A stretch of 63,688 nucleotides of DNA, counting the filler, from Octopus bimaculoides (taxonomy: Eukaryota), in assembly GCF_001194135.2 (NCBI RefSeq). It is 7 parts of 7 records of this genome, joined end to end, with 100 filler letters (N's around TTAATTAATTAA, not from the genome) between each part and the next. Parts side by side here need not be neighbours in the genome. Positions count along the whole stretch, not along the records: positions 15,374 to 30,641 come from NC_069007.1; 6 more parts are not named here. One strand, written 5' to 3'. The position numbers were made by a program, and so were the translations under genes. The notes beneath the pieces were generated by a model that had not been told where the DNA came from, made no database searches, and saw only the letters and a program-made list of their open reading frames with translations. Of the stretch, positions 13,424 through 30,641 are shown one piece after another (the stretch's first letter is position 1; each line of letters begins with the position of its first letter).

Positions 13424-14733
13424 TGAGGGGGTATCAAAAAGTTCTTGGGCTAGTTCTGTAGCACACTAACTGATGATAACTGATGATAACACATGGTTGT
13501 GTGCACAGTGAGATCTAGCAGTGACTTTCATAAGGCAGTGTGCTGAGTGATATCACTGTGTTTACTTTGCAAGTTATGAAATTTGTGTTTTTTTTTTATC
13601 ACATATATGCTGTAGTCTGCGATTTTGTCATGGACAGGAAGTTGGAACAAAGAGCTATCATGAAATTTTGCATTAAACTTGGAAAGTCTGCTGCAGAGAC
13701 AATGAGCATGCTTCAGCAAGCTTACAGTAATGAGACAATAGGTCGTATGCAATATTTTGAGTGGTATGATCACTTCAAAAGCAGGAGAACATCCCTGGAA
13801 GGTGATGAGTGATCTGGAAGACCTGCCATGAGCTTCACCCTTGGAAATATGGAGAAAATTCATCAGTTTGTGTATGAGGATTGTTGGAGGATGGTCAGTG
13901 ATATTGGTGATGTTAGTCTGTCACATAGGTCTATGCAGGCAAGCCTAATGTCTGAATCGAACATGTGGTGTTTGTCCCCTTCCTGCTGACTACTGAGCAG
14001 AAAGAATGTCAAAGTCTGTCAAGATCTCCATCATTATGCTGCTGATGACTTATTCTTCATGTTGAAGATCATCACTGGTAATGAGAGTTGGGCTTACAGG
14101 TATGACTCTGAGATGAAGTCGCAGTTGTCACAATGGAAGAGGCCTTCATCTCCACGTTTGAAGAACGCATGACAGAGTTGTAGCTCGATCAAGAGCATGC
14201 TCATCATTTTTCTTGACATTTGCAGTATTGGGCATCAAGAATTCATCCCCCAGGGTAAGACCATCAATTGAGAGCTTTACTGCGACGTTTTGAAGCATTT
14301 GAGGGAGGACATTCAGTGAAAGTGACTGGATCTGTGGAGTGCGAAGAATTAGATTCTTCATGATAACAATGCACCCTGTTACTGAGCTCTCCTCACTTGT
14401 GAGTTTCTCACTAAAAACACATGGTATTGTTTCTGCACCTGCTCTATTCACTAGATTTAGTACCTGCAAACTTCCATCTCTTCTCCAAGATGAAAATGCA
14501 GCTGAAAAGTTACTGTCTTAACACCGTTGTTGAGATCCAGAGTGAATCACAGAAGGTCCTTGACCTGCTTACGGAAAATGACATCTAGGCCAGATTCCAA
14601 AAGTGGCAGGAACACTGGGATTAGTGTATTGCTGTGCAAACTGGCTATTTTGAAGGATAAGATCTTAAAACTTAGTAAATAAGTTATTTTTTATTAAACA
14701 GAACTAGTCCTTGAACTTTTTGATACCACCTCT
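13424..14733 (+). mobile_element. Full-length (1310 bp) inactive mariner element
   Basis: TA-flanked TIRs (TGAGGGGGTATCAAAAAGTTC / GAACTTTTTGATACCACCTCT). Transposase remnants EQRAIMKFCIKLGKSAAET, IITGNESW, HDNNAP carry stops and frameshifts. Confidence 0.92.
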
Positions 14734-15273
14734 TATCTGTCTGTTTATTTGTTTAGATATGTATGCATGTATGAGGCTGCTGTTATTATTCTTATTTTAA
14801 TGTTGTACCAAATTGCATTCTACAGAAAATATTCTGTGGGAATTTTGAGACTGTGATTGCTTTTAGTAATACTGACTATGTTCTTTCATACCAACACTAA
14901 TTATTACTGACTTATAGAAATACTGTATTTCATTATGCAACCATAATCTTAATATATAAATCTGAAATTGTGTGTTTGTGTGAAGCCTTTTTGAATGTTT
15001 ATAGAAATCCACATTTTCCACTTTTTCGTAAAAATTTTTACATCAATGGAATTTTCTCAATCTGAACTTTCCAGTGCAGTAATTAGATTTTTTAAATTCC
15101 GTTTACTTTGTGTGATTTAAGGGAGATTTGGCTATTGTTTCTAGCAACTTTTATATTTCATCCCTGCTACTTGGAACGCCATTCTTACACACGCGCTCAA
15201 CATAAAAATATAGAGAGTAAAAGTAAAAGAGGGAGAGGGAGAGAGAGAGAAAGTGATACCTACAACGTCATAG

Positions 15274-15373: not shown

Positions 15374-16474
15374 TGTATATATATATATATATATATATAT
15401 ATCACATGCATTCACGGAACACATGCATACTCACATGCGTGCACGTACATTCACATACATACGCTCATACATCACGTGACTCAACAAAACAAACAACGTG
15501 TCATTATATGCATTTCTTAGGAGTTGGGTATATAATTTAATAACAGCTTGAATGAGCTTCATACAACTTTAAAAGTCCTAGACTCGTTGGCCGAACCTTT
15601 CTCTTGTGCTATTTAGAGTAGCATAAAGAGATTTGAGACAACATGCAGTTGGCTACCAGATGTTAGGCCTGTATTGGTCAACTCAGGTCACGTGGTGTCT
15701 TTTACTCTAATGTCTAGCAGCCATCTTGAATTCATATTTAAACACCTATATATGAACATGAATTTTATATATGACAAATACGCTAGCTTAAAATGTACAT
15801 AGATTTAGGCTTAGACATATTTTCGAGGTGAATTTTCCGATTCCTCTCCATCCCCGTTCGCCAGCGAGCATTTTCTTTTTTTTTTTTTTTCGTTTTCGTT
15901 CACTACATGCTGTTTTACATCTATTACACTATTTTCCCCGCTCCANNNNNNNNNNNNNNNNNNNNNNNNNNNNNNNNNNNNNNNNNNNNNNNNNNNNNNN
16001 NNNNNNNNNNNNNNNNNNNNNNNNNNNNNNNNNNNNNNNNNNNNNNNNNNNNNNNNNNNNNNNNNNNNNNNNNNNNNNNNNNNNNNNNNNNNNNNNNNNN
16101 NNNNNNNNNNNNNNNNNNNNNNNNNNNNNNNNNNNNNNNNNNNNNNNNNNNNNNNNNNNNNNNNNNNNNNNNNNNNNNNNNNNNNNNNNNNNNNNNNNNN
16201 NNNNNNNNNNNNNNNNNNNNNNNNNNNNNNNNNNNNNNNNNNNNNNNNNNNNNNNNNNNNNNNNNNNNNNNNNNNNNNNNNNNNNNNNNNNNNNNNNNNN
16301 NNNNNNNNNNNNNNNNNNNNNNNNNNNNNNNNNNNNNNNNNNNNNNNNNNNNNNNNNNNNNNNNNNNNNNNNNNNNNNNNNNNNNNNNNNNNNNNNNNNN
16401 NNNNNNNNNNNNNNNNNNNTTTTTTTTTTTTTTTTTCGTTTTCGTTCACTACATGCTGTTTTACATCTATTACA

Positions 16475-16512
16475 CTATTTTCCCCGCTCCATTTTTTTGC
16501 CCGGATTAGAAA
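16475..16512 (-). CDS. Candidate gene A exon 2 (VSNPGKKMERGK-stop as assembled)
   Basis: The nearest acceptor, CTCCAG| at 16513, gives a 107-nt intron. One fewer A in the A7 run (16492-16498) would open the longer WSGENS..KKKKRK..KYV frame ending at 15811. Confidence 0.35.
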
Positions 16513-16619
16513 CTGGAGTTTAACCAGATTCGGATATATTTACATACAGAAAAGATAGAATTAACTAACGTGATTATGTCATATATTATTAACTTCAAAG
16601 TGTTTGTATCTAAACTCAC

Positions 16620-16818
16620 CTTCTCTATCTGTGGCAGCAGATCGATTCAGATCGGATCCCTCTGATGTCGCTGTCACCGAGGGAATCTCTATGTCGTCAT
16701 CTGGTGCATCTTCATCTGTTTTGGGTTTCTTTAAACACGGGCATATAGATTCAAGAATTCGCTTGGCTCCTGCACACAGACGTGCGAGGAAGCCTTGGTC
16801 GTTAACGTTAGCTGTCAT
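16620..16818 (-). CDS. Gene A exon 1, uncharacterised small protein (paralog of gene B)
   Basis: MTANVNDQGFLARLCAGAKRILESICPCLKKPKTDEDAPDDDIEIPSVTATSEGSDLNRSAATDRE, with aaaATG start context, ending GAAG|GTGAGT (phase 1). 36 of the first 45 aa are identical to gene B. Confidence 0.8.
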
Positions 16819-16955
16819 TTTCCAATAAATAAAAACAATAATTAGTAAATTTATGATCGCAAATGAATGAATCGCAAGAGTAACCTACAAGAAGTTATCG
16901 TCAAACAAGCTGCAAAAGTCGCAATGGATTTTCTCGTTTCTCTCAAGCTGTTATC

Positions 16956-16965
16956 ATGACGTCAT
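16956..16965. promoter_or_regulatory. Perfect CRE palindrome ATGACGTCAT upstream of gene A
   Basis: About 140 nt upstream of the A start codon, inside the block duplicated with gene B. Confidence 0.6.
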
Positions 16966-18657
16966 CATCATAATAAACCGTCTAAGGTCAGGTGTCCATT
17001 GAAAATATAATTTAAACGTTGAAGTTGCACAATCGTCAGCGCATTGGCTAATATGCCTAGCTACGTTTTTTTGTTTCTCTTTCCTTACGTTCTGAGTTCC
17101 AGTCCGGAACATGTTAATTTAGTTTCTGTTTTTTTTTTAGGGTCGATAAAATAAATTTAAATGTCAAGTACTGGAGTCGATGTATCCTTCTTTCCTTTCT
17201 CCTCAGAAATACTTGTCTTGTAGAGACAAAATACCGTTTTAACAACTGAATCATAAAGGATTTGTATGCGTGTCCTTCAATAAATGACACACAAACACAC
17301 ATGCGTGCTGTAAGTTCTGAGTTTCGATTCTTCCGAGGTTGACCTTGCCTTTTATCCTTTCGGGGGTCAATAAAATAAGTACCAGTTGAATACTGGGGGG
17401 GGGTCAAGGATATTGTGGACCTTGTGCCGAAATAAATAAATACCAGTTGTCCGCTGGGGGTCGATGTAATCGACTTACCCGCTCATTAAAATTACTGGCC
17501 CAGACCAAAACTTGTCGGATATTTCTTGTGTGTAACTTCGTTTAAGCTGTTGGTTTGGCAAAGGACCACAGTCATCTTCTTCTGCCTCTTGTAAAGATTT
17601 TACATTTTTCCTCACGAGGAGCCGCACTGTTCTCTTGCAGCAAGAAAACATTAGAAGATTACATTTGTTTTGTGCTGAATTCGCCTAGACTTTAGTTCGA
17701 CGGATAACATGCATAGCAGCATATATTTTCGTTTGTTATAATCTGAGTTCAAATTCCGCCGAAGATGACTTTGCCTTTCATGCTTTCGTGTCGGTTATAT
17801 AAATACTAATCGAGAGGTGAGGGTCGATGTATTCCAATTACACCATTTAAAATTACTGACCTGGTCACAACATTAAATGTAATAATATTTTAAACGTTCA
17901 ATAAGGTCATACAAGTTTTTTTGGTTATTCTACAACAGTGTACATGAAAGTTCTGCGTTTGAGAATACTTGTTTATCGGAAAATATTTCTAGCCACATTA
18001 ATTCTTCCTTGCCCTTTATATAAGTATATATGCGTTCGGAGTACATTTGATGGTAGTTTGAGATCGATATATCTGCTACTTGGAAAGCGTTATGGTGTGG
18101 GCTACATTGGATTTCTGATACAGCTTTCTTAACCTATGACAGTTCAATGACCACGCGTATTCAATCACTAAAGGAGGAATGAATGAAATCCAGACGTTTT
18201 TGAGTTTAAGATGGGTTTTGATGGAAGAATCGTTGTATCAAAATCCATCCGTCCTTTGATTTGATTTCTTCATACTGTCCAGTAGTGGAACTTCCCGTTC
18301 GTTTGAAAAATAGGTAATTGGTTAATATACTATGACATGGTAATCTTGAAGAAGTTAATCACAGACCAGATATGCGAGCGACCAATTTTCTTCGGTGGTT
18401 TGTGCAAAATGGATTAGGGTGCAACTGTATTGTGATACGCACATGTCCCAAAATATTTTACATCGAAGAGAAACAGCATCAAAGTTCAACATATCGTTCC
18501 CGTTCTCAAATACCATCACGGTACACTGTTGTGAGCCGCTAACACTCACCACTAAGCCACGCACCTTCACAAGTTTAAATGATACCTGAACTAAAGACAT
18601 ATCGTATTTAAAATTAGTCTTTATTGCCATATAGCCTAAGCTTTTATAATCCCTCAG

Positions 18658-18812
18658 CTAGAATATACTTTAAGAAGGACTATCCAATGCATGAATCCCC
18701 AGTTCGATACATCACGCATGAGCAAAACCTTGAAGAAAGCTGCATAGGAATGTTTAGCTTAGACGAACCAGCTAAATGCACTGAATCACCCGAATCAACT
18801 AAATGCACATAA
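18658..18812 (+). CDS. Orphan phase-1 terminal exon candidate D (family-related module)
   Basis: CCCTCAG|CT then ARIYFKKDYPMHESPVRYITHEQNLEESCIGMFSLDEPAKCTESPESTKCT-stop. RYITHE matches the exon C repeats and GMFS matches gene B exon 2. Confidence 0.5.
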
Positions 18813-19007
18813 ATGCTACATCAAAGGACATTAGCGGACTTAACCAACGGAAATATGTACTGGATTGGAATCTAATGTGAATTTAATGAGTGTAATAATA
18901 TAATAAACAAATTTTAACGATGTATAAATTCTCCATTGTTCTTTATGATGCCTTGTGTATTCTGTATGATGTGTCGAAAACAGTGAAACAAAGTCGGGAT
19001 TTACATA

Positions 19008-19235
19008 GGCGTAGGACTGGCCGTGTGGTAAGTGGGTTGCTTACGAACCACATGGGTCCGGGTTCAGTCCCACTGCGTGGCACCTTGGGCAAGTGTTTTT
19101 TACTATAGCCTCGGGCCGACCAAAGACTTGTGAGTGGATTTAGTTAACGGAAATTGAAAGAAACCCGTCGTAACTATATATNNNNNNNNNNNNNNNNNNN
19201 NNNNNNNNNNNNNNNNNNNNNNNNNNNNNNNNNNN

Positions 19236-19285
<50 letters not shown>

Positions 19286-19340
19286 GGGGGTCCGTGTTTG
19301 TCCCCCCAAATCGTTTGACAACCGATGCTGGTGTGTTTGT
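19008..19340 (+). mobile_element. tRNA-derived SINE with internal (TA)n microsatellite
   Basis: Head GGCGTAGGA..GTGTGGTAAG..GGTTCAGTCCC recurs throughout the window. Head and tail keep the same orientation across the 19182-19235 gap. Confidence 0.8.
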
Positions 19341-19972
19341 ATTCAATGCAGGTGCAATCGAAATTTGTGAACAAATGTGTGTCGCAGTGTATGTGAATGT
19401 ATGCCTGTTTGTGTGAGTGCACGTGTGTTTGTTTATTTATTCTATTGTATGTGAATGCCTTTGAATAAAAGGTATTGTATGTATCGTGTGCTATTCATTT
19501 CGGATATTAATATGATATTTTTCGCACATGGACTGTAATTTTGAGGAGACAACGGGTCGATAACATCAAAAACACAGACTTCAAATTACTGTGGAGCGTG
19601 GCTGAGCACCCTATTTCTTCAGGGGTGTGTTACGCATTGTCCCATCCCCGTTCAGCTTCTACTGCTTGCGCCCCCATTTTTCATTTTCCTTCTCTTCTAT
19701 TTTTGTTTCTGTGAATTTAAATGTTATAATTTAATAAACGATAGAATAAGACAAGAAACAAAAAGAAACAAAAAGAAACGAATTGCAAAAGCTACATTAT
19801 TTTTACGACTATGAAAAGATGGAATGCAAACACAGGCTTGATTTGAACCCAGAATTTAATGAATCAGAGAAAGACCGCTAAACAGTTTGTGACACGCGCT
19901 AGTCATTGTGCTATCTCGACGATCTTATATCACTTATTATTGATACGTGATCTTGCGATGTTGAATACCATC

Positions 19973-19982
19973 ATGACGTCAT
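19973..19982. promoter_or_regulatory. Perfect CRE palindrome ATGACGTCAT upstream of gene B
   Basis: About 150 nt upstream of the B start codon, at the position homologous to the gene A CRE. Confidence 0.6.
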
Positions 19983-20129
19983 AATAAATTGAGAAAAAGA
20001 ACGAAAAATCTGTTTACAATATTCCATTGCGATTTTAACAGTTTGTTTGACGATAACTTCTTGTACGTTACTCTTGCGATTAATTCATTTGCGTTAATAT
20101 ATTTACTAATTATTTTTATTTATTGAAAA

Positions 20130-20343
20130 ATGACAGCTACTGTCGACAACCAGGGTTTCCTCGCACGTCTGCGTGCAGGAGCCAAGCGAATAATTGAAGC
20201 CATATGCCCGTGTTTAAAGAAACCAAAAACAGATGAAGATTCACCAGAAGACGACATAGATATTACACCACCGATATCAACAGAATGTTCCTCAACTGCA
20301 ACAACAGAAAAATCCGTAAATCTGAATCAGTCTGCTACCGAAG
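20130..20343 (+). CDS. Gene B exon 1, uncharacterised protein (paralog of gene A)
   Basis: MTATVDNQGFLARLRAGAKRIIEAICPCLKKPKTDEDSPEDDIDITPPISTECSSTATTEKSVNLNQSATE, ending GAAG|GTGAGT (phase 1). It is 15 nt longer than exon 1A with the frame preserved. Confidence 0.82.
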
Positions 20344-20765
20344 GTGAGTTGTTGATGAAATTACTTTGAGGTTTTACATAACACGTAAGACCTTTAGATA
20401 ATTATGTCTCCTCTACACATATATGCATCTAATTTCTTCATATACAAAAATCCAATTTTATACACACATTTATATAAATTCAAGCTGTTTGCGAAAAACA
20501 CCACGTGATGTGAGTTCACCAATTGGGGACTAACTAGTAGCCGTCTTGAATGATTTCCCAAATCACTTTATTAATTTCTGGATAATTCAGGAGATAGGAT
20601 AGTCCGGCGTGCTAACGTTTCTGCCAGCTCACCGCCTGGCGAGCTAACGTTTCTGTCGCCTTGTACGTATATATGTATGCATGTATGTATGTATGTATGT
20701 ATGTATGAATGTATGTATGTATGTATTGACAGGTTAAATATTACCATTTATTTTTACATTTTCAG

Positions 20766-20828
20766 GGATGTTTTCAGTACCTGTTACTGTCCATACATCA
20801 GAGATATTTGTGCAAAGATATCCTGACG
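20766..20828 (+). CDS. Gene B exon 2 (63 nt, phase 1-1)
   Basis: TTTTCAG| acceptor, |GTAAGT donor, open in the frame set by exon 1: GMFSVPVTVHTSEIFVQRYPD. Confidence 0.75.
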
Positions 20829-21019
20829 GTAAGTAGTGGCACTTATCATTTTCATTTGTTTTTTTGTCTTTTGCTAGTACTCCAAATTATAGCAATATTC
20901 ACATTTGTCGATTTATACACACTCATGTATGTATGAATGTATATTTTCATCTGCATGCATTAGAGTATATTTATACACACACAGATATATATGTATATAT
21001 ATACCCTTCTTATTTTCAG

Positions 21020-21082
21020 TCTCATCCTCTGCGGAACCCACAGCCAGCGACACTCATTTTGCAGTACAACATTTTACTGGCA
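21020..21082 (+). CDS. Gene B exon 3 (63 nt, phase 1-1)
   Basis: TATTTTCAG| acceptor, |GTAAGT donor, open in frame: VSSSAEPTASDTHFAVQHFTG. Confidence 0.75.
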
Positions 21083-21387
21083 GTAAGTGTTTGTTAATAT
21101 ATTCACACACGTTTTTCATTAATAGCTCCGTCGTGTACATCAGAAGCAGTGCAGAATGCCCCCACACGCATAATTATACTGATATATATATATATATTAT
21201 ATGCACATATATGTAGTTACATAATATATGTGTGAATGTATATAGATACATATTTACAGTCATTAATGTATATAAATATGTATATATGGGTGTGCATATA
21301 TGTATATACATATATTTATATAAATATGCATATATATTGTACATATGAGTATCTCTCTCTCTCTGTCTCTTACCGTCGATCTCTTGG

Positions 21388-21442
<55 letters not shown>

Positions 21443-22275
21443 NNNNNNNNNNNNNNNNNNNNNNNNNNNNNNNNNNNNNNNNNNNNNNNNNNNNNNNNNN
21501 NNNNNNNNNNNNNNNNNNNNNNNNNNNNNNNNNNNNNNNNNNNNNNNNNNNNNNNNNNNNNNNNNNNNNNNNNNNNNNNNNNNNNNNNNNNNNNNNNNNN
21601 NNNNNNNNNNNNNNNNNNNNNNNNNNNNNNNNNNNNNNNNNNNNNNNNNATACATACATACATACATATCGTGTTTGCTTCAAATTCAGATAATTTATTT
21701 GTTTAATTCCGTTTGTTTTGTTGGGTTCATAACATTTGGTCTGCGATAAATATTTACACCGAGTTGTGATTCCCCCCCCCCCATTTCTTGTCTTTTCACC
21801 CTTTCAAACATTATCGGAATTTAATAAATGCTTCTGTTCTGAATTAAGTACGATGACTAAGAAATTTCAGACACAGCATCTTCATGCAAGATGGTATCAA
21901 TCAACCATTGCTCGTTCAGTAATCTAATTATATTAGGTATTTATTGACAGAATATTACGATATTGATTATCGAAAACAGATTTCACTCGCCATTTACAGC
22001 TTATTCATGCTTGGACATGATATGCGTGTATATATATTTATGTATATATTTGTGTGTGTGTATATATTTATGTATACATTCATGCTTGGATGTATGTGTG
22101 ACTGTATATATATATGACTTCATGTTTTTATAATAAATTTTAAATGCTTTCTCAATGCCTTTCTCAACATAATTATTGCATGTTTGTTTGTTTGTTTATA
22201 TTTATGTCAAATTATCTTCATTGTGCTTTGTTTTTCGTTCAATTTCCAGCTCATTTTTCCGATGCCGAAGAAATA

Positions 22276-22342
<67 letters not shown>

Positions 22343-23899
22343 CTAAAAATTAACTTACAAATGCAAGTGTTCCCCGGTTTCAAGCGCCACACTTCATGCT
22401 TGTAATTTTCTGGGTCATACATATAACAATCTCTCTCTNNNNNNNNNNNNNNNNNNNNNNNNNNNNNNNNNNNNNNNNNNNNNNNNNNNNNNNNNNNNNN
22501 NNNNNNNNNNNNNNNNNNNNNNNNNNNNNNNNNNNNNNNNNNNNNNNNNNNNNNNNNNNNNNNNNNNNNNNNNNNNNNNNNNNNNNNNNNNNNNNNNNNN
22601 NNNNNNNNNNNNNNNNNNNNNNNNNNNNNNNNNNNNNNNNNNNNNNNNNNNNNNNNNNNNNNNNNNNNNNNNNNNNNNNNNNNNNNNNNNNNNNNNNNNN
22701 NNNNNNNNNNNNNNNNNNNNNNNNNNNNNNNNNNNNNNNNNNNNNNNNNNNNNNNNNNNNNNNNNNNNNNNNNNNNNNNNNNNNNNNNNNNNNNNNNNNA
22801 ATGCATCGACTCTAAAGTTTATAGAGCCCTCACTGACATTCCCCCGCGTTGGGTGCCAGATATGCGAAGCCTATCCTTGTTTTTTGCTAAAGTTGAAGAC
22901 GCATATCGTAAAGCAAAAATCATGGAGTTAGTGTGCAACGATGATAAAAAATAAATATTTACATCTTAGACATTTGTGAACATCACTCATGAATAAAAAA
23001 TAATAATTTTAAATTCTCCCTTCATTTTTATTTCATCGACGGAATCGTTATCTAGTACTTGGAAAATGTATATTGGAGAAATTGTCCTTAAAAATATGCA
23101 TTATTATGAACTCGCTTAAAAGCTGTACCCGTTGTGGACTTCCAAATTAGCTGCTGCGGAGGGCAAGTTGGGCCTATGGTCCAAAATAATGATTATCTAA
23201 ATAGCATGACTATAATATGTCTATAACGCCTATATGCTCAGGTAGTGTTTCATCAGAGGTTAAGGTTGAATAAGAGTTAATTCCGTAATGCAATCATTCT
23301 GTTGGTCCAGTCCCTATATGAATTCAAACCGTTGGCTAATTAATCCCAAAGTTCTTATTTCGACGTAAAATTAACGAAACGAATGTCATTTATCTCCCCT
23401 TCATCTTTGACGTCATCTGACAAACATCAGCCGAGATGGCGTTTATCAGCCTATCTTTACCTGCTAGAAATAGCAACCCAAATGCTTTAAAATCAAACCT
23501 CAATGCTGGATGTTCAAGAAATAAATGAAGGACAGATTTTCAATCCCAGGATCATCCTGATTCCAAAATGGTATAATATGTCTATGTAGAGCAAATGTAG
23601 ACTGAGATACAGGGGTCCCAGACAGAGAGAATATCACGTTTATTATTATAGACGTTAGGAGATAAAAATAACAAGGATTTGTCAGTAAGTTATAATATAC
23701 TTCGTCATGCGGCTGTTGTTAAGAATCTTGCTTCCCAACCATGCAAAACTGGGTTTATCTCTATGGTACGCTCGCTTGGACAAGTGGCTTCTTCTACAGC
23801 CACGACAAGAGCAAAACCTTGACAGACGGAAACAGATAGAAGCCTGTCATAATTCATATATGCATACATAAACACATGCGTACGTAGTACCAGTTGAGT

Positions 23900-24400: not shown

Positions 24401-25821
24401 TCACAGCAAACAAGCAGATGTGCTCGTACACGCTATACACATATATGTCACTCTGTGACTTTGCCTTGAATAAGAGTCTGTACTACAGCACTGCAATCAT
24501 CCCTGACATAATTTCACAAGGAACTGTATAGGAGTGCACGATTAATGCTAGCTTCTTTTTTCATGCAGATGAGTATATGAGTTACGATATGTTTTTCATT
24601 TTAATTCCATGGTAATTACATGACAAAACTTCTATGTTATTATTTGCCTTTATTGAATGATCATATGGTATTATAGACTCTATTGACTGAGACAATTACT
24701 CGGCCTTATTTTCGTTCCTTTGAAATATTACATAATTTCCTAGATTTCTACTTTTTTCCTCTTCAATCATGAAATATTCTTGTTACCATACTCCTTGCTG
24801 TGTCATATTAGTTAGGTTAGAGAAATGTCCACTATTTGCTATAATTAGCTATCATTATATACACTAATATTTTTATTGATATTTTTTTCCCTTTCTATAC
24901 GCATGCATAATGGATTAAGATGTGTCACCGGAAAGGAGTAAAGAAAAAAAAATCGCAGAAAATCGACAATGTCGTTATTGGCAAAAATGAAATGAAAACA
25001 ATCTAAGACGTTACAAAGAAAGGAAAATATGGTAAGAATAAAACCTGCCAATTTGAAAATCCTAACGTGAATGAAAACAATTTGTTCCTGCTAATGAAGA
25101 TGGTGTTGTGGAGATTATTCGAAAAATAAATAAAATTTCTAGAGAAGAGTAATTGGTGAGCACTAATGAAGATAATATTGCAGGGAAGTGATCGAGGTTT
25201 GTCTTTAAATTTTATTTGTTGCTTGTTCCATTCATTGGACAGCAGCCATGGTGAGGCACCGTCTTTCTTTTTAGTGGAAAAAAGAGAGTTGAAATCAGTA
25301 CTTAATTTATATTGTCTGGCACATGGTTTTCTTATACTCATTTAACGAATCGCTACGATACTGGGATGTAAATAAACCAACAATGGTAAACAAGCGCTGG
25401 CCAAGGCGGGGAAAGTGCAAACACAAATACATTCATATCATATTCTTTTACTCTTTTATTTCTTTTAGTCATTTGGCTGCGGCCATTCTGGAGCGCCGCC
25501 CTCAAAAATATATATGCGCATATACACATATGTACACACATATACATACTTACACACGTATATATATATATATATATNNNNNNNNNNNNNNNNNNNNNNN
25601 NNNNNNNNNNNNNNNNNNNNNNNNNNNNNNNNNNNNNNNNNNNNNNNNNNNNNNNNNNNNNNNNNNNNNNNNNNNNNNNNNNNNNNNNNNNNNNNNNNNN
25701 NNNNNNNNNNATATATGTATATATATATATATATATATATGTATACATATACAGGGAATAATTAAATGTATATATATACATATATATATATGTATATATA
25801 TATATACACACACACACACAC

Positions 25822-25891
<70 letters not shown>

Positions 25892-27389
25892 ATATATATG
25901 TAATCCAAACAACTCCAGTTCCGATTATTAGAATTAATAGATTATTGAATTTAGCTCCGACGAGTTGTAACTTACATACATATAGTTAGGACATAATTAC
26001 TTAGACTTAAAATAGGATTAATCATAATGAAAATTTGACTAAATCAAGGGGTAATGCATATGTATATTCCCGTCGAGGGTACAATGTGCTGCAAATCACC
26101 TTATGTCTCCTGGAGTATTGTATAACTTACGTTAAACCGTGTCATTCATACAAATTTACGTCTATATTGCAGATGTTCAAAGAAATCTTTAGTCACATTA
26201 GGTTACGTTTAAATGCAAATACATACTCCGAATCTTCTGTACAAGATCTTTTATGAGTATTTTGATTACTTAAGCATTTATATACAGCAGATCACCTCAC
26301 TTTTGAAACGGATATTTAGAACATATATCTTATTCTGATAATGTTTATTGAAAAGCTCTTCACTTACCAAAATGTTTTACAATTTTTCTCCAAAAAATAT
26401 GTTTGAGATTATTATTTGAGTTTCAGAATTGCTAATTGATTGATTTTTTTTATTTTTATTCTATCGAAATTAAAATATATTCCTCAAATACATTACAATT
26501 ACTTATCAACAAAACATAAATAACGGTATTGTTTTACTTAACAAAGACCATTTTTTTTAACAGGTCTTATCTCAGATTCCATTTATTCAAATTGAAACCC
26601 GAGAAATACAATGAAACCATGTATTCTATATATTTTCTAACATTCAAAAGAATATCGCTTCATATTGTTCAAGCAGCCATTCCATTTAATAGAGATTACC
26701 ATGTCACATTTAGATGCAGATCATCTGAGGCTGTTGGAGAAGCTGTTTCATGAGTACAGCTATTAGGCAAACATTTAAGCAAGTGTGGTTGGGTGTGGTA
26801 AGAAGTTTACTTCCCAGCCACATGGTTCCAGGTTCAGTCCCATTGTGTGGAACCTCCCGCAAGTGTCTTCTACTATAGCCGCAGGCCGCCCGAGGTCTCG
26901 CATATGGATTTGTAGAAAGAGAAGCTGGTGAAGCACGTTATATATGTATATCTATCTATCTATCTATCTATCTATACATATATATATATATANNNNNNNN
27001 NNNNNNNNNNNNNNNNNNNNNNNNNNNNNNNNNNNNNNNNNNNNNNNNNNNNNNNNNNNNNNNNNNNNNNNNNNNNNNNNNNNNNNNNNNNNNNNNNNNN
27101 NNNNNNNNNNNNNNNNNNNNNNNNNNNNNNNNNNNNNNNNNNNNNNNNNNNNNNNNNNNNNNNNNNNNNNNNNNNNNNNNNNNNNNNNNNNNNNNNNNNN
27201 NNNNNNNNNNNNNNNNNNNNNNNNNNNNNNNNNNNNNNNNNNNNNNNNNNNNNNNNNNNNNNNNNNNNNNNNNNNNNNNNNNNNNNNNNNNNNNNNNNNN
27301 NNNNNNNNNNNNNNNNNNNNNNNNNNNNNNNNNNNNNNNNNNNNNNNNNNNNNNNNNNNNNNNNNNNNNNNNNNNNNNNNNNNNNNNNN

Positions 27390-28264: not shown

Positions 28265-30030
28265 TAGAGTACTGGATATTTCTACAGAAAATGTCTTACG
28301 AGTAGAGTGGTTAATTAACTATTGCTATAGCTGGTTTCACCTTACACAAGAGTGACAGCAACATTTCAAGTTGTCCATTGGCTCATGTCTTATGAGGAAT
28401 CATGGTGTTCCTGCATATTCTGAAATAGTGGCAATTCTCTCTAGACCAGCTGGGAAATGGTTATACATATTAATATTGCGGCACTGATCTATGTAAACAT
28501 CATCAAGCCTTGCAATGAATTAGCCGACTGGATCAGGATTATAATCCATTGTACAGGCTTGTTTTGTTCCCAAAGGGGAGACATATTTTGGGACATGATT
28601 GTCATGGATGTTGATAATAAACTGAATGCAGCAATTGTTATTTAAACAGCTTGATGTATCAAATATCAATAATTACGAAATGTTTATATAGGGAAGAAAT
28701 ATTATCACATGAGTACATTAAGAGCTCTCGGAGAGCGGTTAAAAAGGATAGCCCCAATGGGTTTAGAAAGAAGCGCTAGGAATTGATGCTGAATGGTGTC
28801 AAAGCTTCGTGAAACAAAGGGATGGCTCTTTGTGACGTGTGGTTCCATTTTCATATATTACTAAACCGATCTTCTAAAAATTCTGAAAAAAAAAGATGGC
28901 GAGTGTTAATTCAGTAAATAGGTAAATAATGAGCATTTTTAAAGCAGAAAATAATTGATTGCTGCAATGGTAAATATTATTGCAAAGTTATCCAGTGGAT
29001 TTCCTAAATATCTTTGACTCTCTTGGGAGCCTGGAACAAAGATTGTGTTATAATGCTTTTAAAAAAGCTTATGGCTCTTTGCAATAGAACAAGATCTCAT
29101 GAAGTGGGGGACATTATAGCTGAAGATGAAAATCATGCAAGAAGATGTCTAAGCTACATCATTCTGATGGCTAGAAAAACTGCGATCGTAGATATGCTCA
29201 CACAAGGCTGAGATGGTGCTAAATGCCCTCATCCTTAACGTTATCATCACCACCACCACCGCCACCACCACCACCGNNNNNNNNNNATCGCACTCACCAT
29301 ATTAGATGTCATCGTGTGTCAGCTCCATCTAATATGGTGAGTGCGATGGAATGTGTAAGATGGGAGAAACTATTACAAAGAGATGAAATTGTATGGGTTG
29401 AGGATAAAAGGCAGGATCCAGATATTGTAAAACCATGTACGGCATTCTCTCGCGGGAAGCTCAAAAAATTGTACATATATCGTAAATGGTTGCCTCTTAA
29501 ATATAACTCCGATATTGTAGTTTCCATAGGAACTGCAATATTGAATTATATTTCGTCCTCTTATATGTCTCGGACACAAACAGGAATTGAAGTCCTATGC
29601 CGTGAAATATTTCTTTACCACACTGTGTGTAATTTAGTAACCCGGGATATATAGACATTATGATTTTCTGAAACGGAAAGAAGACAAAGGAGATAATATT
29701 TCTTCACCCTTTCTTCGTATGCGTTCGTGTCTTTAGATTGCATAAGAATTTCATTTGTAAATTTTTGCTGATCACCGGTGCGTCTCGGAGTCAAAGCGCC
29801 ATAATATACCCCCTGATGTAAAAATAGTTTCTGGCACATGGAACTCAATTTGGTAAACTTAGCAATTTAGTTAACCGGTCTATATAGACAGTGTGAGTTT
29901 CCAGATGAAGAATATACGAACAGAATATATTTCCTTAACCCTATACACCTCGTTGATATTTACATTAATACTTATAATACTTATCTAAATCGGCAGTTGT
30001 TCTGCCAAACCAACTCTTCATAACTACGTG

Positions 30031-30284
30031 CTATTTATATTTGATCGGTGGATTTGATGACAATGATAAAGAATCTGGGACAGGTGATTCGCTATCGATC
30101 TTTGTCTCATAAGAAATGTATAGGAACTCTGCTGGAGATACTGTAGCAGGTGAACCAATATCGACCTTTTTCTTTTTCTCATGAGGAACGTATAAGAACT
30201 CTGTAACAGATTCTGAGGCAGGTGTTCTACTATTGATCTTTCTCTCGTAAGAAATGTATCGGAACTCAATTGTATATTCAGGGA
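30031..30284 (-). CDS. Candidate terminal exon C with three ~22-24 aa repeats (not in the ORF track)
   Basis: TAATCAG|TC (phase 1) then PEYTI-EFRYISYERKINSRTPASESVT-EFLYVPHEKKKKVDIGSPATVSPA-EFLYISYETKIDSESPVPDSLSLSSNPPIKYK-stop. Repeat periods of 66 and 72 nt are multiples of 3. Confidence 0.6.
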
Positions 30285-30641
30285 CTGATTACGCATGGAC
30301 ACTTTAGATACATAGATATATATCACGCAAGTTTTCTATGATCTTCTCTTTCTTACCCTGTGGCTTTCTCTCACTCTCCTTTTCACTTCCCCTCTATGTC
30401 TCTCTCACTCTCTCTATTCTCTCGCTCTCTGTCACTGTCTCTGTTTATATTAATGGGATTTTCACATCCTAAGACATTCACTCTGTATTAATTTGCTGTA
30501 CACTCCATTTCTCACTTTCATTAAGCCTTCCCTTTTCTCTCATATAATCTCTCTAACTCTCACTTTCATTTTTCTCCACCTCTCTCACTTGGTGGCTTTA
30601 CGGTTCTATAGCTCTCTCTGAAATGCATATATATATATATA

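Follow-up and report, generated by a model that had tools for sequence, protein, structure and literature searches.

Two short exons, referred to here as exon A and exon B, face away from each other between positions 16620 and 20343 of a 63,688-nucleotide (nt) stretch of DNA from Octopus bimaculoides (RefSeq assembly GCF_001194135.2), the whole of which is called the window below and to which all coordinates refer unless another sequence is named; the piece of the window considered here comes from NC_069007.1. The question raised by this locus is whether the two exons belong to two real genes that arose by an inverted duplication and, if this is the case, of what family these genes are members and whether both of them are still working. 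The results described below indicate that the locus in all likelihood harbours a paralogous protein-coding pair (genes A and B), which was made by an old inverted duplication in which a whole small gene was copied together with its own promoter, and that the family to which both genes belong is restricted to Octopus. The finding is a fairly ordinary lineage-specific duplication of real, old paralogs, which will not surprise a specialist. However, there are many lineage-restricted genes of unknown function in cephalopod genomes, and the locus adds to them an unannotated member (gene A) and corrects a mis-terminated model (gene B), so that it is chiefly of value in annotation and in providing a basis from which studies of expression can begin.

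The head-to-head exon pair, its arms and its promoters

Exon 1 of gene A is encoded on the minus strand (16620-16818, with the ATG at 16818; 199 nt, i.e. 66 codons plus 1 nt) and its peptide begins MTANVNDQGFLARLCAGAKRILESICPCLKKPKTDED..., and exon 1 of gene B is encoded on the plus strand (20130-20343; 214 nt, i.e. 71 codons plus 1 nt). The two ATGs are separated by 3312 nt, with 54 estimated Ns counted in, and both exons end in the same donor, GAAG/GTGAGT (a slash in a splice site marks the junction), both introns being of phase 1. Among the first 45 residues 36 are identical and there are no indels, the corresponding codons differing by 7 synonymous and 9 non-synonymous changes; past codon 45, B shows relative to A indels of +21, +3 and -9 nt, which amount to a net difference of +15 nt. 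A preliminary description made from the window had reported divergent exons with 36/45 identical residues, no early indel, a net difference of 15 nt and a common donor, and this is confirmed in every particular.

The similarity between the two sides of the locus is much greater than chance would allow, and it extends well beyond the exons. An ungapped inverted repeat (I9) of 161 nt, 88% complementary, is found between the arms, and a gapped alignment pairs 16533-17104 with 20429-19840 (blastn E = 1e-84). Collinear with the latter is a further block, in which 15589-15774 is aligned with 20605-20438. Since these alignments span more than the exon, the inverted duplication took the upstream region with the promoter, exon 1 and intron 1, and the proposal that two real paralogous genes stand head to head as the result of an inverted duplication is borne out. 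In their full detectable extent, arm A covers 15589-17104 (minus strand; far upstream sequence, promoter, exon 1 and part of intron 1, in two collinear blocks) and arm B covers 19840-20605 (plus strand; upstream sequence, promoter, exon 1 and part of intron 1), and they differ by 20.7% over 434 aligned nt and by several indels. The spacer between them (17105-19839, 2.7 kb, with no strand assigned) is not duplicated and is rich in SINE (short interspersed nuclear element) fragments: two SINE-like fragments occupy 17303-17398 and 17727-17848, and a complete SINE extends over 18999-19338, with an assembly gap (19182-19235) in its internal (TA)n tract.

Each gene has a proximal promoter/5' leader of its own, at 16819-16990 (minus strand) for A and at 19974-20129 (plus strand) for B, in which the same block of ~120 nt is conserved; as the two promoters are 3.3 kb apart, they do not form a shared bidirectional promoter. 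Both contain the palindromic octamer TGACGTCA, which resembles a cAMP response element (CRE), at 16957-16964 (minus strand, 146 nt upstream of the ATG) in A and at 19974-19981 (plus strand, 156 nt upstream of the ATG) in B. The window has 3 matches to TGACGTCA, against 0.13 expected, and two of these are the ones at like positions in the A and B promoters. The octamer is intact in 6 of the 7 family promoters, where its flanks have diverged and where it is placed 146-161 nt upstream of the ATG; the remaining promoter has TGACATCA instead. The conserved leader also contains an invariant GACGATA (with a TGACG half-site) and three TTGCG motifs, and it has no upstream ATG. We propose, from these comparisons, that an old inverted duplication copied the whole small gene with its promoter, giving the divergent genes A and B; each copy retains a compact promoter/5' leader with TGACGTCA ~150 nt upstream of the ATG as well as a first exon (encoding a basic amphipathic helix, Pro-Cys and basic residues) with its phase-1 donor.

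A family of six-exon genes in Octopus

Searches with a 199-residue O. sinensis paralog and with a family profile retrieved 16 proteins, the named matches among which are from O. bimaculoides, O. sinensis and O. vulgaris only, the few others being short open reading frames (ORFs) from sequencing runs; an exhaustive phmmer search of 1.84 billion representatives added no relative outside Octopus. The members are uncharacterised proteins of ~180-200 residues, present as 'uncharacterized' RefSeq and GenBank entries in the three Octopus species, and a literature search on the locus identifiers found no paper. The view that this is a lineage-restricted family, and one that matches no known family, agrees with these results: Pfam gave no match for either exon peptide or for the 199-residue relative, a sequence profile search of PDB gave nothing (best E = 1.6), and the best match of a model of the C-terminal fragment in a Foldseek search against PDB (E = 1.4) was treated as meaningless. 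A word-indexed search with exon 1 of B gave two proteins, viz. O. sinensis XP_036355767.1 and one unspliced Logan ORF; it missed the 100%-identical UniProt entry A0A0L8ID84, and absence in that search is hence weak evidence. Exact look-ups in a contig index of two 79-residue read-through ORFs, of A0A0L8ID84 (P0007) and of A0A0L8HF53 (P0015) returned no record.

The gene structure of the family was taken from the O. sinensis contig L001 and from P0003, a relative of 199 residues. It consists of six exons, viz. exon 1 (66 codons plus 1 nt), internal exons of 48, 48, 63 and 63 nt (L001 10570-10617, 12986-13033, 13582-13644 and 13985-14047) and a last exon of ~59 codons. All introns are of phase 1 and the internal exons are symmetric (phase 1-1), so that dropping or skipping any one of them preserves the frame; the O. 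vulgaris model CAI9741596.1 is without exon 4. The two 48-nt exons encode D(A/T)xSEHSELSDETYIR and YRSDDSSDG..., the last exon encodes ..FSDxEEIPRGPFYEPLVLTDIFF...VHLAEFFVFALNGNITMNV.., and a DNA alignment of seven sequences, A and B included, has a phase-1 donor GA(A/G)G/GTGAGTT at the homologous codon. The locus gives the family a defined architecture, with six exons, symmetric phase-1 internal exons, a Cys-bearing helix and a C-terminal beta module, and it gives a conserved family promoter with a CRE-like site. One earlier statement has to be corrected in this regard: the family was described as having a constant N-terminus and divergent C-termini, but the tail of exon 1, which is variable, forms a disordered linker, and the true C-terminus, which is encoded by the last exon, is strongly conserved.

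The relatives fall at two distances from A and B. In LOC106872864 (XP_014775488.2), LOC118761726/LOC118761728 (XP_036355765.1/XP_036355767.1) and CAI9741596.1, exon 1 is 65-77% identical to that of A and B. The N-terminal motif MTANV..GFLARLRAGAKR..PCLKKPKTDE is common to A, B and the LOC106872864-like proteins, and the genes for these share with A and B the donor codon and the promoter/5' leader with TGACGTCA. The further exons of B are homologous to exons 4 and 5 and to the start of exon 6 of these genes, but B differs from them in being without the two 48-nt exons and, as assembled, without the C-terminal module. A divergent subfamily (MSDVLHRPGFLTRLRKGAR...), comprising LOC106880393, LOC106880409 and LOC106879479 of O. 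bimaculoides and LOC118765860 and LOC118765758 of O. sinensis, has the GFLxRLRxGA helix, the conserved Cys (mostly as Pro-Cys), an acidic linker rich in Ser and Thr and a C-terminal module P..VTDI(F/Y)...NG..TM.V in common with them; however, its identity is only ~24-30% and its genes are located on different chromosomes (records of 65 and 72 Mb). L004, a chromosome-scale record of O. bimaculoides that is 43% N, represents a different paralog.

Two observations on O. sinensis contig L001 may be added. The RefSeq model XP_036355767.1 (122 residues; VCDQ01005617.1 ~13581-14960) continues past exon 4 for three codons of intron sequence (G/GTAAATTATAA, giving GKL and a stop); as intact homologs of exons 5 and 6 are found downstream of its end, the gene is probably full length like its 199-residue partner and the model truncated. 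Further, the 3' region of the paralog at L001 15340-16330 consists of ~1 kb of short tandem repeat units (ACCAGCGCCGAGTTAGTATAAAGTATAAAG.), which are absent from the readable window, where the equivalent place is in or near the gap 22439-22799.

Age, constraint and present condition of genes A and B

The O. vulgaris sequence used for comparison (L005, i.e. OX597840.1) is gapless, and segments of the window match it in a single order and orientation at 84.5-91% identity. Exon 1 of A with its promoter (16605-17143) corresponds to L005 10214-9676 (84.5%), gene A being the positional ortholog of CAI9741596.1; the spacer segments 17312-17800, 17800-18532, 18531-18630 and 18632-19007 correspond to L005 8631-8147 (88%), 7739-6995 (91%), 4875-4776 (87%) and 4401-4015 (86%), so that orthology reaches 19007; and intron 5 of B with the start of its last exon (21650-22274) corresponds to L005 1516-879 (87%). 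The last exon of B in O. vulgaris (L005 728-1516, minus strand) stays open until ..FSDVEEIPRGPFYEPLVLTDIFFEKDLQYLHLAELFVFALNENITMNVAIYLNIDEQ and its stop codon, and it is on the strand opposite to the A ortholog. Since O. vulgaris has both the A ortholog and a last exon of B on the opposite strand, the divergent arrangement is older than the split between O. bimaculoides and O. vulgaris, and the synonymous divergence (dS) of 0.40 between A and B, against 0.17 between A and its O. vulgaris ortholog, fits a duplication before that split.

A head-to-head pair of two other family members is present in a gapless O. sinensis contig, in which the inverted arms comprise whole genes, are ~5.3-6.6 kb long and are 85-95% identical (L003 1-5316 vs 16303-9656). 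In their promoter/exon-1 segment they are 97.8% identical, with 1 amino-acid difference in 66, which suggests that this segment has been subject to local gene conversion or strong constraint. Inverted-duplication palindrome gene pairs provide a likeness, as they also have two inverted arms, each with a promoter and a gene, around a unique spacer, and the identity pattern of the O. sinensis arms is as expected in such pairs under local conversion or selection. However, unlike palindrome pairs with gene conversion, the O. bimaculoides arms are ~20-45% diverged outside a core of 270 nt, and there is therefore no sign of ongoing homogenisation. The locus is of use as a case study of ageing inverted duplicates, in which constraint is limited to this core and the disabling lesions differ by species.

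The similarities of A and B to the other copies do not all point in the same direction. By its promoter indels B is placed with LOC106872864 and the O. sinensis pair, and A with CAI9741596.1 and L002; the core distances group the three O. bimaculoides copies with each other; and B alone shares a 7-codon segment, TPPISTE, with the distant subfamily, this segment being without a counterpart in other MTANV-type genes. On the basis of these characters the history of A and B appears to be mosaic, and no tree has been forced upon it. At the DNA level, the segment is an apparent insertion of 21 nt in B (20265-20285, codons 46-52), which aligns with TP(S/P)(L/I)(S/A) in P0009 and P0011 and more weakly with P0010 (TSSLS). 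Probably the segment was present in the ancestor and was lost by deletion from the other MTANV-type genes, a history in conflict with the grouping of B by its promoter indels.

A block of ~450 nt in the spacer (17960-18410) may be noted here separately. It is ~94% identical to O. vulgaris, whereas the neighbouring non-coding segments are 85-88% identical; it has indels of 11 nt and 1 nt, which speak against a coding function. Neither the spacer of the O. sinensis paralogs nor Rfam gave a match to it, and it may represent a regulatory element used by both genes or an RNA that is not annotated.

Between A and B, the ~120 nt that precede the ATG have diverged by 10%, the first 135 nt of coding sequence by 12%, the rest of exon 1 by 29%, the intron by 28% and the far upstream sequence by 45%. 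Over the whole of exon 1, A and B differ by 14 synonymous and 18 non-synonymous changes, with a ratio of non-synonymous to synonymous divergence (dN/dS) of 0.34, and the binomial probability for the excess of synonymous changes over the neutral expectation is p = 0.011. In the first 45 codons dS is 0.28, as high as the divergence of the intron; because it is not depressed, constraint acting on both the protein and the non-coding leader/promoter accounts for the core better than a recent conversion tract does. The substitutions unique to one lineage in the 270 columns of the core number 2 in A, 6 in B and 14 in the O. vulgaris ortholog of A, and the comparisons that involve B give the lowest dN/dS values (0.21-0.40). 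As judged by these patterns of substitution, the comparisons show exon 1 and the proximal 120 nt upstream of it to have been held, in both copies, by purifying selection.

A number of observations weigh against the interpretation of the locus as a pair of retained genes. The comparison of A with its O. vulgaris ortholog gives a dN/dS of 0.83 and a uniform divergence of 13-17% over promoter and exon, and taken alone it reveals no constraint; it looks neutral, however, because most of the changes occurred on the O. vulgaris branch (14 unique substitutions vs 2). In the core, the distances among the three O. bimaculoides paralogs are smaller than those to the copies of other species, and some gene conversion or concerted evolution may, to judge from these distances, have taken place among them. 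The later exons of gene A are beyond the edge of the piece at 15374, with ~700 real bases of intron 1 visible, and the only matches of the family from outside annotation (Logan P0001, P0004, P0008 and P0011) are unspliced genomic ORFs. For gene B, tblastn over the whole piece gave no match to family exons 2 and 3 (48 nt each), and the homology of its last exon to every relative stops at 22274/22275. In the O. vulgaris interval L005 1517-4014, where these exons should be and where there are only SINEs and microsatellites, no exon 1, 4 or 5 is detectable, and the O. vulgaris counterpart of B has thus lost its 5' half (exons 1-5). The absence of exons 2-3 and the broken last exon in one species, and the absence of exons 1-5 in the other, suggest that gene B is dispensable.

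The two genes differ in how much of them can be read. For gene A, no protein model that holds exon 1 was found in the databases searched, and we interpret it as a working gene that is unannotated and probably intact, of which exon 1 alone is readable. The UniProt protein A0A0L8HF53 (P0015) was considered as the 3' half of gene A and rejected, as its exons 4 and 5 resemble those of the O. sinensis pair and not those of the O. vulgaris ortholog of A. Gene B, on the other hand, is already represented by UniProt A0A0L8ID84_OCTBM (P0007; 2015 gene set), 113 residues of which are identical to the spliced exons, residues 1-71 being those of exon 1. Since relatives are also in RefSeq and GenBank, the description of both genes as unrecognised applies only to exon 1 of A, for which no model was found.

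In gene B, intron 1 (422 nt) is followed by a second exon at 20766-20828 (plus strand; 63 nt, phase 1-1, GMFSVPVTVHTSEIFVQRYPD; homologous to family exon 4), with the canonical acceptor ttttcag/G and donor G/gtaagt, and by a third exon at 21020-21082 (plus strand; 63 nt, phase 1-1, VSSSAEPTASDTHFAVQHFTG; homologous to family exon 5), both exons being collinear with those of O. sinensis and having canonical splice sites. The model A0A0L8ID84 splices exon 1 to these two exons and then reads into the intron until a stop, which adds 44 spurious residues; its tail is reproduced by reading through past 21082, and it has no splice to the last exon at 22250. The start of this last exon (family exon 6) is at 22250-22275 (plus strand; acceptor tccag/CTCATTTTTCCGATGCCGAAGAAAT) and comprises nine codons, T-HFSDAEEI. 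Past 22275 there are a (CT)n(TA)n microsatellite (22276-22342), 96 nt of unrelated sequence and then a gap of 361 N (22439-22799); reading on leads into the microsatellite and to an in-frame stop, and what can be read of gene B does not include the ~50 codons for the conserved C-terminal module. Beyond the gap, the 3' flank of B at 22813-23029 (plus strand) is weakly homologous to sequence downstream of paralog stop codons (66% to L001 16304-16517, 64% to L004). As assembled, gene B has lost exons 2-3 with the frame preserved and its last exon is interrupted, and this break may be a real lesion or an assembly defect. On the latter point, it was observed that tracts of (TA)n, (CT)n or (TACA)n flank nearly every gap in the piece (gaps 21443-21649, 22439-22799, 25578-25710 and 26993-27389), so that the contig breaks in the O. 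bimaculoides assembly track microsatellites, which bears on the reality of the break in the last exon.

The most serious alternative, then, is that gene B, and possibly also gene A, is a pseudogene, i.e. a decaying remnant in which the observed conservation is due to past selection or to occasional conversion from working paralogs. We regard this as a substantial possibility, falling somewhat short of an even chance. It would account for the lack of exons 2 and 3 in B, for a last exon that loses its homology and runs into a microsatellite and a stop, for an O. vulgaris counterpart that consists of the last exon only, for the intron read-through by which the 2015 model of B reached a stop, and for the mutual closeness of the O. 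bimaculoides paralogs in the core. However, exons 1, 4 and 5 of B have open frames, their splice sites are canonical and their phase is preserved, and the loss of exons 2-3 preserves the frame because the internal exons are all of phase 1-1. The low dN/dS values of the comparisons with B, and its 6 unique substitutions in the core despite a neutral divergence of ~0.3-0.45 from A, also speak against a pseudogene, and the break in the last exon, adjoining microsatellites and the 361-N gap, may be a defect of the assembly. We infer that gene B represents a shortened variant, or else a copy that was disabled recently; its functionality is doubtful. The earlier claim that the genes are functional is made doubtful for B by the absent exons 2-3, by a last exon that is cut after nine codons and by the loss of exons 1-5 in the O. 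vulgaris counterpart.

It could also be suggested that the two arms are an artefact of assembly, being either uncollapsed haplotypes or a paralogous contig that was misplaced or flipped by way of the SINE. The contig that carries exons 1, 4 and 5 of B (19236-21442) is indeed bounded by gaps on either side (the second at 21443-21649), each of its ends being (TA)n; it has no counterpart in O. vulgaris; and SINEs, being present in very many copies, might mislead a scaffolding program. The orientation of the contig hence rests on the two SINE halves, on the last exon of B, which the next contig carries on the same strand, and on synteny. With regard to the first of these, the 183 nt to the left of the gap 19182-19235 comprise the head and the core of a SINE and end in ...CGTCGTAACTATATAT (TATAT), and to the right of the gap there is (TA)n(TG)n followed by the 3' tail of a SINE (GTCCGTGTTTGTCCCCCC..TTGACAACCGATGCTGGTGTGTTT); this layout of head, microsatellite and tail matches that of 6 other full SINE copies in both order and orientation. 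The gap is within the internal microsatellite of the SINE, its flanks fit one element in one orientation, and as it is located in the intergenic spacer, no reading frame crosses it. The last exon of B in the next contig is directly downstream on the same strand, and the position and orientation of that contig relative to A are confirmed by the gapless O. vulgaris sequence; the earlier argument that the SINE across the gap supports the orientation is thus upheld. Further, arms ~20% apart, with several indels and a dS of 0.40, are far above the level of haplotypes, and the head-to-head design is found for paralogs in the gapless O. sinensis contig, so that haplotypes of one locus, which the preliminary description had named as a possible refutation, are excluded by the divergence and by the arrangement in gapless assemblies of two other species. 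An assembly artefact in either form is, in our view, very unlikely. One gap within arm A does reflect a minor assembly error: the 73 bases to the left of the gap 15946-16419 (474 N) are repeated on its right with 71/73 identical (flanks 15874-15945 and 16420-16491), which indicates that this gap is spurious and represents an unmerged contig overlap, and that intron 1 of gene A is accordingly ~547 nt shorter than it appears.

Lastly, the inverted repeat around a 2.7-kb spacer rich in SINE fragments might suggest that the ORF common to the arms comes from a transposable element, of which the arms would be the terminal repeats. This can hardly be correct, since a high-copy transposon ORF is excluded by the finding of only ~20 related proteins among 5.8 billion clusters (all from annotated single Octopus loci or short unspliced genomic ORFs), by the lack of a transposase, reverse transcriptase or other Pfam domain, by the fact that the ORF is exon 1 of a spliced gene of six exons, the orthologs of which are syntenic, and by a spacer that is orthologous between species and not mobile.

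Predicted protein features and other observations

Both A and B carry the motif of the family, viz. Met, eight residues, GFLxRLRxGA(K/R)..., Pro-Cys and then basic residues. F10, R13, L14, P27 and C28 are nearly invariant (at least 90% of sequences) in alignments of 11 and 10 sequences (A3 and A4), which include four proteins like those of the divergent subfamily; in a further alignment (A6), to which P0014 and P0016 were added, C28 is kept in all aligned full-length members, and P27 is replaced by Leu in P0014 and P0016. AlphaFold2 places a helix at residues 7-29, with a predicted local distance difference test score (pLDDT) of 55-58, and the N-terminal helix has a hydrophobic moment of ~0.6 (18-residue window from residue 13). 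The net charge is +4/+5 over residues 1-33 and -26 for the whole of the 199-residue P0003, and as the maximum of the Kyte-Doolittle (KD) hydropathy in a 19-residue window is 1.2, there is no transmembrane segment. The middle of the family protein is long, acidic, rich in Ser and Thr and disordered, and it is followed by a conserved C-terminal module of ~45 residues for which three antiparallel strands are predicted (pLDDT 73-79).

In their general design these proteins are reminiscent of N-terminally S-acylated peripheral membrane proteins such as GAP-43, paralemmin and SCG10, with which they share a short basic amphipathic helix with a Cys beside Lys/Arg and an acidic disordered remainder, without a transmembrane segment or signal peptide. 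However, GAP-43, paralemmin and SCG10 are without a C-terminal beta module, unlike the family, and have no sequence or fold similarity to it. From these features it might be proposed, tentatively and as something we consider rather doubtful, that the family proteins are soluble and would be tethered to membranes by the N-terminal helix and an S-acylated conserved Cys, that the beta module would serve for self-association or the binding of a partner, and that transcription would be under the control of basic leucine zipper (bZIP) factors of the CREB/ATF type, the last point following from the established CRE consensus. Two points count against this proposal: the AlphaFold2 model of the full-length relative is poor (mean pLDDT 42), and S-acylation, tethering and CREB control are read from sequence features only. 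A wider view, in which the family would be an octopod innovation of small acidic proteins, regulated by activity or by cAMP (driven by CREB/ATF) and tethered to membranes by an acylated helix, and its pairs would be kept together by a shared spacer element (candidate 17960-18410), is a speculation that we consider improbable.

Among the remaining observations, scans of the piece with Rfam models and for tRNAs found nothing. The third TGACGTCA of the window, at 23408-23415, is ~1 kb beyond the 3' flank of B and is followed by ..GCCGAGATGGCG..; its surroundings have no similarity to the family promoters, and it may belong to the promoter of an unrelated gene or be due to chance. A minus-strand ORF at 30024-30326 (100 residues), for which Pfam gives no match, contains three direct repeats of ~60 nt (30070-30267), spaced 66-72 nt apart, which are 60% and 82% identical to the reference copy.

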